Notes: generated by a model not told the origin, from the letters alone. Positions 1,036 to 62,904 are shown, counted from the first letter of the stretch. The stretch: 64,000 nt of DNA from Paraphysomonas bandaiensis (GCA_965644295.1 CBFFRP010000149.1:195671-259670); one strand, 5' to 3'. Program-made: numbers and translations.

Positions 1036-1388
1036 ATGTATGTATGTATGTATGTATGTATGTATGTATGTATGTATGTATGTATGTATGTATGTATGTA
1101 TGTATGTATGTATGTATGTATGTATGTATGTATGTATGTATGTATGTATGTATGTATGTATGTATGTATGTATGTATGTATGTATGTATGTATGTATGTA
1201 TGTATGTATGTATGTATGTATGTATGTATGTATGTATGTATGTATGTATGTATGTATGTATGTATGTATGTATGTATGTATGTATGTATGTATGTATGTA
1301 TGTATGTATGTATGTATGTATGTATGTATGTATGTATGTATGTATGTATGTATGTATGTATGTATGTATGTATGTATGTATGTATGTA
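1036..1388. repeat. (TATG)n microsatellite, about 88 units
   Basis: Pure tandem TATG; it generates the spurious MYVC/HTYI ORFs. Confidence 0.99.
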
Positions 1389-1559
1389 ACAAGTGTTTCA
1401 CGTCGAATGCAGAATCATCTATTAGGAACACTTCATCTATTAGTGCTGGTGAACCCTCACATCGCTACATCTCCTCGGAGTGTACTAATAATATGATGAT
1501 ATTTATGTAATACATCTTTCTATTATTATATGAATAATTCACCATTCCTATAATTCTAT

Positions 1560-3276
1560 ATGGGGAATTCCAGTAGTCGTCGTTCAAAGGGACCGGAAAC
1601 AACCGACCCAACGACACCCACCGGGTACATATATATATATATGTATATATAATCTGATATGTATATATATAGACTGTATGAGTCTTGTGCATGGGATCAA
1701 AGGATTGTTACACGTATGATAGCAGAGAAAAAGATTGCTCCTAGATATAAAGGCTCAGGAGTGGAGTCACCGGACACAGAGGAGTGTCCTATATGTTTCT
1801 TGGTAATAAGATAGTGATATATATCTCATTAGCTCATATAATATGTATATATATAGAATTATAAAGCTGTGAATAGCGCCTCATGTTGTAGGAATTATAT
1901 ATGTACAGGTTTGTGATCGAGATGTTTGTTGATGGTTTGTAATGGTACTGTTAGAATGCTACCTTCAGGTTAAAGTACCAAGAGGCATATCAACGTGTCC
2001 ATTCTGCAGTAGTTCTTCATTTGGTGTGACATATACCCCTAAAGCCTCCACTTCAACACCTGGTCCTGGAACCAAATCTTCATCTAGCACACCTCAGCGA
2101 CCAGCAGCTCAACCAAGCGCATCATCTACCCCTGTCAGCATACCACATGCATCTTCCCCTCCTATAACCCCTGCTCCTCCTTCATCTCCCGCCTCCAGCC
2201 CCCCCGTTATGTCTGCAGAGTCTCGACGTCTACTGGAGGAGGAAATGCGCAATCAACGGTGGGACAGGATATCTAGTGACTCTTACGTCACTCCTCGTTC
2301 AGACCGAACTGCATGGTCTGGAGGAAGACGTAGTGCATCTGGAAGGAGTCGCAATGGTGAAGAGAGCCGGAATAGTAGTGGTCGTTATGGTTCTCGCGGC
2401 CGTGGGCGGGCGGGGCAGCATACTTTAGAGAGTGTGCGATGGCCCGATGGAGTCACCGATGGTGGTAGCAATCTCCTGGATCTCGGTCAGATTGAAGAAA
2501 TGATGCTTATGGAGGTAAGCGACGTACAACATTATGCGTTTATTAGCTCTTCTGTATATCTTGTTTGTGAATATTGACATGCTACGCTTCAGGCTATTCG
2601 ATTATCTATGAGTGAGACCGAACGCTCTCCAACTCAGGAAGATAGCAAGATGTCATCGACTGATGATGTAGGCCTGGCGGATGGAGATATTGACCTCGAA
2701 CTTGCTGATGAAGAAACACTACTACAGTATGCACTTAGTCTATCCACAGCTGAGCAGGGCCCAGGGAATTCTACTACTAGTGAAGTGGACCTATCTGGCA
2801 GTACTGGCATTGACACTGAGGGCACACTCACTACTCAGAGCGTCGCACGCCTTGACCTCGATGTCTCAGTAGACCAGGCATCGCTGGTAATGCACGCGGC
2901 GGATTCAGTAGAGGAGGACTCAAAGGGCATACCCCTCTCCACCTCCGCTCAGCGGCTCATGAGCATGATTGATGAAGCTCTTAGCACACCTCCAGGGAGT
3001 GCCGGAAAGCCCCCCGCAGCCTCTTCTGCGTCATCTGTCGATGAGGACTCTTCTAGCAATCTAAAATCACCAGAACAACATAATGAAGGCGATAGCTACA
3101 AGGAAACGGCCGTCGATGAGGAAAATGACTCCTCTACTTTTCAGCTGAAACCATCTGCGGATGCTACATATTCCTCCAGTACGAATGGAAGTGGGCCGCA
3201 CAGCGACACTGATGGGAACCAGCATACTGGAGCTATAGTGAATACTCTGGACATGGATGACAACACCCATTCTTAG
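1560..3276 (+). CDS. GW2/DA2/SIP5-like RING E3 ubiquitin ligase with UIM-like motifs, 5 exons
   Basis: Manual splice: ATG1560 MGNSSSRR (myristoylation-like), then LYESCAWDQRIVTRMIAEKKIAPRYKG...EECPICFL|NYKAVNSASCCRNYICT|ECYLQVK...CPFC. QIEEMMLME|AIRLSM and EETLLQYALSLS are UIM-like. All introns GT-AG. Confidence 0.85.
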
Positions 3277-3968
3277 CGTTCAACTACAGACAGTTAACTT
3301 GTTGCATACTATGAATGCCCGTTGTAAGGCTTGCCGCAATCCGTTATTCCACTGCCGATCTATAATATCGGTGTTGTCTTGCTACTTTTCTATGCTTTCT
3401 TCTTTTTCTTCATATCAAAGTTTGACAAGACAGGCAAACCTCTGTTCTATACCTCTATGATTCTGCACCACTCTTCGTTGGTTGTGTACAGGGCGAGTCA
3501 TGCTCACTTTAATAATTATTTGTTTACCATATTGAAGAATTATGTGTTCCCTCCACCGCTTTACAGCCGTTAAGCAGTATGCTACCTGAATTTATATAGT
3601 GTTAATGTTTCAATGGAAGAACACGAGTACAAGAGTATAACTTCTATTATTTTTTCACCGATATCAAGTTGGAAAGCTCTTGACACACTCGTTACGCCTT
3701 ACGCAGGGAAGGTTGTATTAGAACCATCAACAGTACATATGCAATGTCTGAGAGACAACCTGTGTTGTGTGTATCATCTAATTGTAGGCTGCATACTACG
3801 TCGTACGTGGATAACATAATACTAGCATGCTCTGATATTAAAGTGTTGTAGTCGACTTGACATGCCAGAAATGTGTGAAACTGAATATATCTTAAATGTT
3901 GGAATCACTCTATAGAAGTGTTGTGAAATTATTAGATAAGTACACACACAAGTCCAGCAGCACTGTAT

Positions 3969-5389
3969 TTATTTTTCGCGAGTTTGATAAATAACATTCA
4001 TGGCATTGCGGTAACATGCCTCTACCACAGTATCTAGATCAATGCATTTTATTTCGGAAATTGCTTGAGCAATGATTAATATATGTCCAGGATGAGAGAA
4101 AGTCGCTTTCAGTGGATTGCAACTATCACCAGTGCTCAGCATGGGTGGGAAATAAGGGCTGTTCGATTCCAGGACTATTTTACAAAGAGGTATATCAAAG
4201 ACATACTCACGCAAGTACTTTTGCTTTGCGTGTGTTATGCGACAATCTATAGAAAAGTAACACTGAGGAAACATATCCATTATACTAACAACAGTGTCCC
4301 ACTCTAAACCACAGGGAGAGAGTTGTACAACCAGTGGACACCACAAATCCCCAACGCATGCAGAGGAAGTGGTTAAATTTCTCAACAAACCAAGAATATC
4401 TGAATCTATAGTTAAAGGTGGAGTTTCGACATCGTTTTCAGACTTCTCTGCAGATAAATAAATGAACTTCGCCGGGCCACAATCATGCACGCATAAACAA
4501 GGCACTGTTTCCACTTCATCATCAGGAATGAGTGCTGTCATCTCTACATCAGGTTCCTTAGATAATATGCTCCTTCTTGTGCATGCCTCGTTGCACATCA
4601 TAGCAGCCTCAAGTTGCAACCTTAAGCATGTCAGCTGGCTTTCACGAGAACTATTGGCAAGTACATGAGAAGTGTAGTTTAGCCCCATGGGACCCATGCC
4701 CACAACACTAGAGCGAGCATAATAATCCACTATAACATCCCGTAGAGGCCTTAAATCATCATCATGTATACCAGTAAGCAATTTGTGATGATTTATCCAT
4801 GCAGAAGTATGAATAGGAGGTATACCCACAGAGTATCCTATACTCTTATCCATAGACTGTATACTATCCGTTAACTTGAAGGTATAGTGATGCACATCAA
4901 GAGGACAACGTATCAATACACCATCCAATAGTTCATAAGGAAAATCATTTCCAAACTTCTCATTGGATACAAATTCATCACTTCCTTGGAAGTCATTGAT
5001 ATCACCTTCATAGTTCATATCTATGATATGATGACTTGTTACTGGATATGATACACGTAATAAAGACTGATGATCTTTCTTTTTTTTTGTAGGCTTTTTT
5101 TGTCCTCTATAAAATACATATATATGAATATATCTTAATATACATACATATATATGTATATATACCTTTCACGTTGTTTAGATTTCGGCCGTACGGGATC
5201 TACCGGATCATGAGATTGATTGTCAATTATATTACTATTAATATCATTATATGGACAATCTTTACGTAAATGTCCCCCTTTTCCACATAAAAAACATTTC
5301 ATTTTTTTAATTTTTGATGTATTGGGACATTTTCCACTTAAATGACCTTCTTGACCACATTTATGACAATTACGATCTTTATGACCCAT
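3969..5389 (-). CDS. TatD-like protein with two N-terminal CCHC zinc knuckles and a degenerate active site
   Basis: Exon 1 has CHKCGQEGHLSGKC and CFLCGKGGHLRKDC. A GT-AG intron at ~5107-5165 joins it in frame to ORF 3969-5018. TatD-like motifs: VVGMGPMGLNY, QLTCLRLQLEAA, PLVVQ, YFSIDCRIT, IPLCKIVLESNSPY, HPGHILIIAQAISEIK. Confidence 0.8.
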
Positions 5390-5726
5390 AAATTGGCTTA
5401 TTTAGGTATTAATATGCACTATAAGGGATTAAAGTTAGGTGTTTTTAGTATCACGTAGTTTGGATTTATATATACGGGTGATGTATGTGTATTGTGTTGA
5501 TCTTAAGCTACGTTAATATCTATATGTACAGCTTCATAGAGGCAGAAGTAAGAAGGAAGCACACTTGCTTGTTCTCACTCACTCACACTTCACACATACA
5601 TCAGTAGCAGCAGTATACAGAGTATATGTACAATACCATGTACTGCTCTATTCATGGTGTCGTAGTACGATAATACAATACAACAGTACCTTTACGTTAC
5701 GACCACTCATACAAACATATCTCCTC

Positions 5727-61654: not shown

Positions 61655-61910
61655 TAGTGTGCAAGAGGTGAAGTCAAATCATAGGGGTAACGGGTGATTA
61701 TAGTTACAAAGGAATTAAATTCAGTTACTGATGTGTGACTATATAAGATATAGGACTGACTGATGAACATATGATGAACAGATGTGGCTGAATATGTATT
61801 GTTCAGATTAATAATCACAATTCTCTCTTGAAAGTGCATTGTGTTCAACAAAGCAAGCTTAAGATTTACGTGTAGAGCAAAGTTAACTTCAGTGAAAAGT
61901 CTAATTGTAA
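61655..61910. repeat. Unclassified dispersed repeat, copy 2 of 2
   Basis: Colinear with 7400-7660. Confidence 0.8.
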
Positions 61911-62099
61911 CTCTGATGAGGCGAAGGAGGACAACAAGGTGCTAAAGTTTGTCAAGGAGGAGACTGAGGTATTAGCTCAGAAAATAAGGATCCATCTGAT
62001 GAAGAAGAATCGATATCAATTTGGGCTAGAGCCAAAACTTGCTTAAGGTGGTAGAGCACGAGAATTATGACATGAGCAAAATGATTCTTGTGTTGCAAC

Positions 62100-62512
62100 T
62101 GCCCCATTCCGAGGGCGTGGCGATAGTGTAGGCTGGCTGGTGCACCACCTAAAACACCGAGATATAGCACTGATTCTACTACTCACCCACAAGTGTACCA
62201 ACGTAGCTGACCACATAGATCACGCGCAGATTCAGTTGCCCCCCCCCCACCTGTGTTCACCTTTGCTGAGATTACGCAGGATTTCTAGTGACCATGCATG
62301 ACTCCGTATAGATCTAGTGTGACATGTCCATCCCCCTACTCTCCCTTAGAATGCGCGGGGTTTCTTGTAATCTCATATAAGCTATGCAAGTATGTGTACA
62401 GCTAGATAGACACACAAACAATACGCTGAGAGTTTTATTAATAATCTATACCTTACTTAGCATAGTTAAAACTCGCACTTCACCAATAGGGGTACGCTCT
62501 CAGAATGAGGCA
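62100..62512 (+). mobile_element. Solo LTR of family 1 with 5-bp TSD
   Basis: tgccccattccgag...ctcagaatgaggca flanked by gcaac at 62095-99 and 62513-17. Confidence 0.9.
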
Positions 62513-62582
62513 GCAACGATTTAGGCAGGAGGCTGATCATGAACATGAAGCAGGCAGATGTATTTGAGGCAGGTTGCCCATC

Positions 62583-62904
62583 CATACATGCATACATACA
62601 TACATACATACATACATACATACATACATACATACATACATACATACATACATACATACATACATACATGCATACATACATACATACATACATACATACA
62701 TACATACATACATACATACATACATACATACATACATACATACATACATACATACATACATACATACATACATACATACATACATACATACATACATACA
62801 TACATACATACATACATACATACATACATACATACATACATACATACATACATACATACATACATACATACATACATACATACATACATACATACATACA
62901 TACA
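62583..62904. repeat. (TACA)n microsatellite
   Basis: Near-pure tandem array. Confidence 0.99.

Follow-up and report, generated by a model that had tools for sequence, protein, structure and literature searches.

Seven long TATG arrays

The DNA considered here is a 64-kilobase (kb) window of the Paraphysomonas bandaiensis genome (GCA_965644295.1, CBFFRP010000149.1:195671-259670; coordinates count from its first nucleotide), in which long arrays of one tetranucleotide repeat, (TATG/CATA)n, lie next to the 5′ ends of genes. A first-pass annotation had proposed that these arrays form a promoter or boundary system placed at a near-fixed distance upstream of start codons; the observation is partly confirmed, and its interpretation is supported in part. 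Tandem Repeats Finder and a regular-expression scan of the window returned seven long arrays of this single class, 170–464 base pairs (bp) in length, each with 39–116 units and a period of 4, within the microsatellite range of 1–6 bp per unit. Self-identity at period 4 is 0.96–1.00 in six of the seven, and array 3 is degenerate (0.77). No other microsatellite class of at least 28 bp was found in 164 kb, comprising the window and 100 kb from two other contigs. The two short upstream tracts reported in the first-pass annotation are also present: a TATG-type tract at about 25929–25976, and a + strand (TGTA)8 tract at 51367–51398, 428 bp 5′ of the start codon (51826) of a + strand gene.

The public sequencing runs used here consist of assembled contigs, and RNA runs X8 and X9 and DNA run X3 were compared over positions 28610–33080. 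An independent DNA contig from X3 spans the 4.4 kb that separate arrays 2 and 3, and at either end extends 32–33 letters into the array, which shows that these two arrays are not assembly-junction artefacts, an outcome that the first-pass annotation had named as a danger to its own proposal. Such repeats are often found at contig joins or at the 3′ ends of long interspersed nuclear elements. That the arrays arose as artefacts of assembly, or form the microsatellite tails of a single retrotransposon family, is nevertheless scarcely credible: besides the spanning DNA contig, the arrays lie inside a contig, and no homology is shared among the flanks of the seven. An element shared by the array flanks was rejected on the same grounds.

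Read directly from its letters, TATG is a strictly alternating pyrimidine–purine sequence, as had been noted, and this alternation makes Z-DNA formation by the arrays chemically possible. Single strands of the repeat do not fold (minimum free energy (MFE) of 0 for both strands), and a hairpin or cruciform model of the arrays was rejected. Literature searches found no published account of this repeat in Paraphysomonas.

Genes beside the arrays

The gene map of the window, built from codon scores and open reading frames (ORFs), is crude, and an exact-protein look-up returned no recorded annotation of this genome; all seven ATGs named in the first-pass annotation open plausible proteins. Array 1 (1036–1388, + strand) is a 100% pure (TATG)88 tract located 171 bp 5′ of the start codon (1560) of a + strand gene, whose RING/UIM-like protein begins MGNSSS; coding signal is absent on its left side (1–1035). 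Array 2 (28363–28647, − strand, reading CATA on the + strand) is flanked by two head-to-head genes: GAR1 on the − strand, with its ATG at 28166 (196 bp away) and a glycine–arginine head, and a 10-exon + strand gene with its ATG at 28800 (152 bp away). Exon 1 of the latter gives a weak TRAP-gamma-like Pfam match. Array 3 (33036–33205, − strand), composed of degenerate CATA units, lies 178 bp 5′ of the silicon-transporter ATG at 32857 on the − strand. Beyond it is transposon debris with frameshifted + strand ORF pieces at 33879–34273, which appear copia-type and Gag-like by eye and have no Pfam match.

Array 4 (39365–39671, − strand) has a TACC-variant head at 39365–39406 followed by CATA units, and is situated 118 bp 5′ of the − strand methyltransferase ATG at 39246. 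Array 5 (41966–42429, − strand, CATA) lies 92 bp 5′ of the + strand ATG at 42522 of a DDX11-like helicase, the protein of which begins MSIDSIPFPFTPYP. Array 6 (58708–58936, + strand), a (TATG)57 tract, occupies a same-direction gap, 418 bp past the stop (58290) of the previous + strand ORF and 137 bp 5′ of the ATG at 59074 of an FG-GAP gene. Array 7 (62579–62904, − strand, CATA) has no recognisable gene start nearby. Its left flank (61649–62516) is a dispersed repeat with copies of 75–85% identity at 7394–7661 and 10802–11294, and its right flank lacks coding signal to the end of the window.

The statement that long arrays stand upstream of genes therefore needs qualification: the arrays are real and promoter-adjacent, but no gene start is recognisable near array 7 or to the left of array 1. 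Likewise, the ATGs and the proximity of the arrays to them are sound, but the spacing is not fixed, as 92–196 bp is a two-fold range. Eight array sides are turned towards a host gene, and in seven cases it is the 5′ end of the gene that they adjoin (binomial P = 0.035 against 0.5), a null that is generous because 5′ gaps are longer than others. At the head-to-head loci, array 2 and arrays 4 and 5 jointly fill the inter-gene space, and they do so in near-centred positions (flanks of 196/152 and 118/92 bp; a small sample). Array 3, arrays 4/5 and array 7 each separate a gene start from transposon debris. By position alone, array 2, arrays 4 and 5 together and array 3 are placed as boundaries would be, between independently regulated units.

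Transcript ends relative to the arrays

Contigs from X8 and X9 are derived from RNA, since they are spliced at nine GT..AG introns of 46–124 nucleotides (nt) in the 10-exon + strand gene (28714–31132), and the absence of RNA from the convergent gap at 31133–31311 indicates that both runs are free of detectable DNA. The 5′ contig end of this gene is at 28714 in X8 and 28759 in X9. The X8 end lies 67 nt outside array 2, with a TATA-like run at about 28686–28692 preceding it by 24–28 nt. The start site of the 28800 gene is thus outside array 2.

At array 3, the silicon-transporter RNA contigs reach position 33031 and continue for a further 31 (X8) or 21 (X9) letters; the X3 DNA contig continues for 33. 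The transcript therefore extends at least 21–31 nt into the array. The transporter leader (32858–33062, − strand) is at least 195–205 nt long and contains eight upstream ATGs, each with a short reading frame; TATG units supply five of these ATGs. These upstream ATGs could exert translational control over the transporter, as judged from their arrangement. Because one contig starts outside array 2 and the other inside array 3, no fixed relation exists between start site and array.

Judged by the contig end beside array 2 and by the seven ATGs at 92–196 bp, the arrays lie at most a few hundred bp 5′ of where transcription starts, with the exceptions of array 3, which RNA enters, and array 7, which has no gene. 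The convergent gap, of about 180 bp, also contains no array. The first-pass annotation had stated that arrays avoid both convergent 3′ ends and introns. None was found between convergent 3′ ends, but this is indistinguishable from chance, convergent gaps being few and short. The intron claim is true of the long arrays; TATG-like patches of 25–60 bp do occur in modelled first introns, including those of the 1560 gene and the DDX11-like gene, both of which bear an array. Degenerate tracts of this kind at 1626–1652, 22029–22076 and 42630–42687 fall in three first or early introns, all known from gene models only.

Promoter features with and without arrays

TATA-like boxes and a G-poor stretch in the last 50 nt before the ATG are common to genes with and without arrays. 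The G fraction of these 50 nt is 0–0.12 in 13 of 14 sampled genes, the exception being the Fic gene at 0.38. This scarcity of G probably marks 5′ leaders in the genome as a whole and may be of use in locating start sites.

These features bear on the proposal that the array is itself a core promoter, with initiation within it or at a set distance from it. That arrays lie 92–196 bp from seven ATGs and that silicon-transporter RNA contigs run into array 3 would fit such a proposal. The test of it failed, however, in that arrays are not found at most promoters and the start site does not occupy a set position: the contig start at 28714 is outside array 2 and behind its own TATA-like box, most genes have no array, and promoter features are equal with and without one. 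Initiation inside an array in the TATG orientation would also fill the leader with upstream ATGs. A core-promoter function is largely refuted and highly unlikely, and the promoter system of the first-pass annotation is not supported, as few gene starts have an array, the same promoter features occur without one and no fixed start site was found.

The gene-upstream gaps also accept other insertions. A family of miniature inverted-repeat transposable elements (MITEs) of about 150 bp, with terminal inverted repeats of about 10 nt (CGTATCGGC...GCCGATACG), has copies in the window at 5727–5855, 9147–9297, 9339–9485, 22381–22540 and 45985–46143, and another at L006:6868-7023. All of the window copies lie in gene-upstream gaps that lack a long array, about 50–150 bp from the nearest gene start on the crude ORF map. 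Two MITE copies adjoin short CATA runs.

Gene-side flanks of the arrays resemble eroded repeat. TATG-like patches, defined by at least 18 matches in 24, number about 21 in the window besides the arrays; most of them, on the crude ORF map, precede ORF starts. This threshold was passed by 39 and 9 windows, respectively, in two array-free pieces, against 0 in shuffled sequence. Together, the shared TATA-like box and leader, the eroded flanks and the MITEs at similar distances suggest that 92–196 bp is the width of promoter plus leader that insertions must spare.

One array split by a probable CryptonS-type element

Arrays 4 and 5 are separated by 2,294 bp (39672–41965, − strand) that appear to be a decayed, non-autonomous element of the CryptonS type. 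The motif GTTTCACATATGC occurs three times in this element and 56 times genome-wide, against four for a control; its copies share a common arrangement, with head-to-tail stacks among them. For a − strand ORF at 40979–41404, the genome yielded 104 matches, of which about 20 are at 80–98% identity, and the protein library 326 relatives. The motif and protein copies together mark a multi-copy, mobile family. Full-length relatives (726–762 amino acids) carry the invariant residues R221, K248, H333, R336 and Y370, in the order found in tyrosine recombinases, and the ORF of this copy ends just past the first catalytic Arg box. Pfam returned only a weak Phage_int_SAM_4 match for the Crypton protein, and a Protein Data Bank (PDB) profile search with it gave nothing relevant.

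Kojima and Jurka reported in 2011 that most CryptonS elements have TATGG termini (PMC3212892). In the 39672–41965 element, TATGG (on the TATG strand) stands at the array 5 junction, and a second TATGG is found at 39679–39684. The array 5 junction, in which CATA repeats come after GTTTCACATATGCAGTC, is found unchanged at seven genomic loci; the left element junction is almost unique, with one other locus. Work on Chlamydomonas lends support to Crypton integration in which a short core at the element's end recombines with a target almost identical to it, frequently close to genes (PMC9977147).

Between the head-to-head methyltransferase and helicase genes there was thus originally a single array, which a transposon split into arrays 4 and 5. 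All seven arrays of the first-pass annotation are real, but they represent only six independent loci. The repeat unit is nearly the TATGG crossover core of stramenopile Cryptons, which suggests that arrays serve as docking sites; for arrays 4 and 5, such docking is shown. The insertion went into the array and spared both promoters. Crypton-related head-to-tail stacks with periods of about 1.6–3.4 kb were also observed on several contigs (e.g. C357, C432, C478, C218, C53 and C71).

The relation could instead run the other way, with the arrays made or enlarged by Crypton tyrosine recombinases. Register-shifted integration and excision would then add units, and the arrays would be transposon footprints near genes. 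This would account for the single expanded motif, and is in keeping with the element inside arrays 4/5, its TATGG junction and the recurrence of that junction at seven loci, as well as with the element stacks elsewhere, as judged by coordinates. Chlamydomonas Cryptons also insert near genes and in 5′ untranslated regions, and excise cleanly (PMC9977147). Against this stand the numbers, an estimated 2,250 or so arrays and roughly 100 Crypton fragments, and the lack of Crypton sequence in the flanks of six of the seven window arrays. It is simpler that the element finds its core in a pre-existing repeat, and a Crypton origin of the arrays is considered very improbable.

Abundance and clustering in the genome

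The genome comprises 62.56 megabases in 669 contigs, and the genome-wide data on the repeat are exact pattern counts on both strands. There are 127,451 occurrences of (TATG)10 and 123,925 of (TATG)11; subtraction leaves 3,526 perfect tracts that are 10 units or longer. These tracts comprise 159,185 units and cover 636.7 kb, equal to 1.02% of the genome, with a mean of 45 units (about 181 bp). As the seven arrays of the window hold 11 such tracts, the genome is estimated to contain about 2,250 arrays, one per 28 kb or so.

Array density in the window is three times this estimated average. No array was found in 100 kb of contigs C1 and C20 (two 50-kb pieces), where about 3.6 would be expected at average density (Poisson P of about 0.03); arrays are regionally clustered. 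Gene density is roughly one per 2.5 kb, and in the window an array accompanies about seven gene starts out of roughly 26. Set against gene number, some 2,250 arrays leave most genes without one and are too few to serve every gene.

Origin and possible roles of the arrays

The favoured explanation, which is judged moderately probable, is that the arrays are a lineage-specific microsatellite that becomes long only in mostly untranscribed, promoter-adjacent spacer, and that they are not promoters and serve in addition as Crypton docking sites. They would probably nucleate in the alternating pyrimidine–purine DNA, akin to TATA boxes and rich in short TATG-like runs, that lies upstream of genes. 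Slippage would then lengthen them, with a larger local duplication on at least one occasion. That occasion is recorded in array 5, where a 23-nt boundary word containing the palindrome CACAGCTGTG occurs at 42198–42220 and at 42428–42450 and nowhere else in the genome. Its repetition 230 bp apart shows local duplication of the boundary together with 53 units, which extended the array toward the helicase gene.

Lengths of hundreds of bp would be reached only in the mostly untranscribed spacer just 5′ of core promoters, the compact genome, with its introns of 46–124 nt and a single measured convergent gap of about 180 bp, offering little room elsewhere. The 92–196 bp interval would then represent each gene's own promoter and leader, kept clear by selection, and no spacing rule set by the array would be required.

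Several observations weigh against this explanation. Simple slippage and tolerance do not explain why a single motif expanded, and perfect tracts that average 45 units are exceptionally long for a repeat of four nucleotides. The silicon-transporter transcript indicates that arrays are not always silent, and arrays cluster regionally. Unique spacer in head-to-head gaps is 348 and 210 bp where an array is present, compared with about 450–740 bp in array-less gaps (a small sample), which could mean that an array takes over the work of spacer. The RNA evidence, moreover, covers two gene starts, from contigs, and there are six independent array loci.

Some of these points favour a different proposal, namely that the arrays are selected cis-elements of promoter architecture. 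As such they might take up negative supercoiling generated behind diverging polymerases, by adopting Z-DNA or a different non-B form, or they might determine chromatin state, so that neighbouring promoters are uncoupled from one another or shielded from upstream transposon debris, with repeat length as a tuning knob. The shorter unique spacer beside arrays, the restriction to one motif of extreme length and purity, and the position of arrays in head-to-head gaps (array 2; arrays 4 and 5) or, for array 3, with a gene start to one side and debris to the other, all speak for it. A moth provides a precedent, in which ABCC2 is silenced when the (ATGT)n repeat of its promoter is long, repeat length acting as a switch of chromatin state (PMC13710865). 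Most genes and head-to-head gaps nevertheless lack arrays (about three of nine divergent gaps have one), array 7 adjoins no gene, MITEs share the same upstream niche, and start site and array have no fixed relation. Hairpin or cruciform versions of the proposal fail because the repeat strands do not fold. A selected role of this kind is doubtful, though it is the least unlikely of the alternatives. Any effect of the arrays on expression is one that we infer, and a regulatory or boundary role is possible.

A broader form of this proposal would make the arrays a selected, genome-wide promoter-spacer system, combining Z-DNA-prone torsional buffers that decouple adjacent promoters with a safe harbour that mimics TATGG and draws Cryptons to harmless DNA, away from promoters and genes. 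This combination is improbable. If the arrays did tune or insulate promoters, about two thousand hypermutable gene-side repeats would be a source of fast-evolving expression variation for this grazer, and their single motif would offer a simple handle on repeats, DNA torsion and chromatin at promoters. If they are mere marks of tolerance, they would still flag promoter gaps in an unannotated chrysophyte genome, explain Crypton landing sites and show how compaction shapes the distribution of repeats.

Comparison with known repeats and transposons

Unstable tandem repeats in yeast promoters reportedly tune expression, a finding attributed to Vinces et al. in 2009. In Plutella, the ABCC2 promoter carries a rotated form of the TATG unit, (ATGT)n, whose length determines the chromatin state (PMC13710865). 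Like both, the TATG array is a short-unit tandem repeat 5′ of a start site; unlike them, one motif makes up about 1% of the genome, has perfect tracts that average about 181 bp, and is known here from sequence and contigs. Z-DNA-prone (CA/TG)n tracts also occur upstream of genes. TATG shares with them its strict pyrimidine/purine alternation and an upstream location, where negative supercoiling accumulates, but half of its steps are TA, which is less favourable to Z-DNA, and the comparison rests here on sequence.

Waldo elements of the R1 clade insert in ACAY repeats. Chlamys Penelope-like elements target (C)n (PMC9977147). As in these two cases, the TATG array is a multi-copy, low-cost landing site for a transposon. 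In contrast with these retroelements, the element here appears to be a tyrosine-recombinase Crypton, and the array is next to promoters. The element resembles the CryptonS group of stramenopiles (PMC3212892) in having TATGG at both ends, in lacking long terminal inverted repeats and in its probable membership of a tyrosine-recombinase family with a conserved C-terminal region. It differs from a typical CryptonS in that this copy is a decayed, non-autonomous relic and in that its target is a microsatellite with a unit nearly equal to the core.

Other genes of the window

Pfam matches identify TatD (− strand), Fic (− strand), OsmC (+ strand), an aminotransferase (− strand), NSUN5 (+ strand) and CFA20 (+ strand) in the window, in addition to the silicon transporter (− strand), the methyltransferase (− strand), the DDX11-like helicase (+ strand) and the FG-GAP protein (+ strand). 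A Pfam scan of the small flanking ORFs gave no match. For the orthologous DDX11 locus, metagenomes yielded a single distant match, of 36% identity, with 155 bp of upstream sequence.

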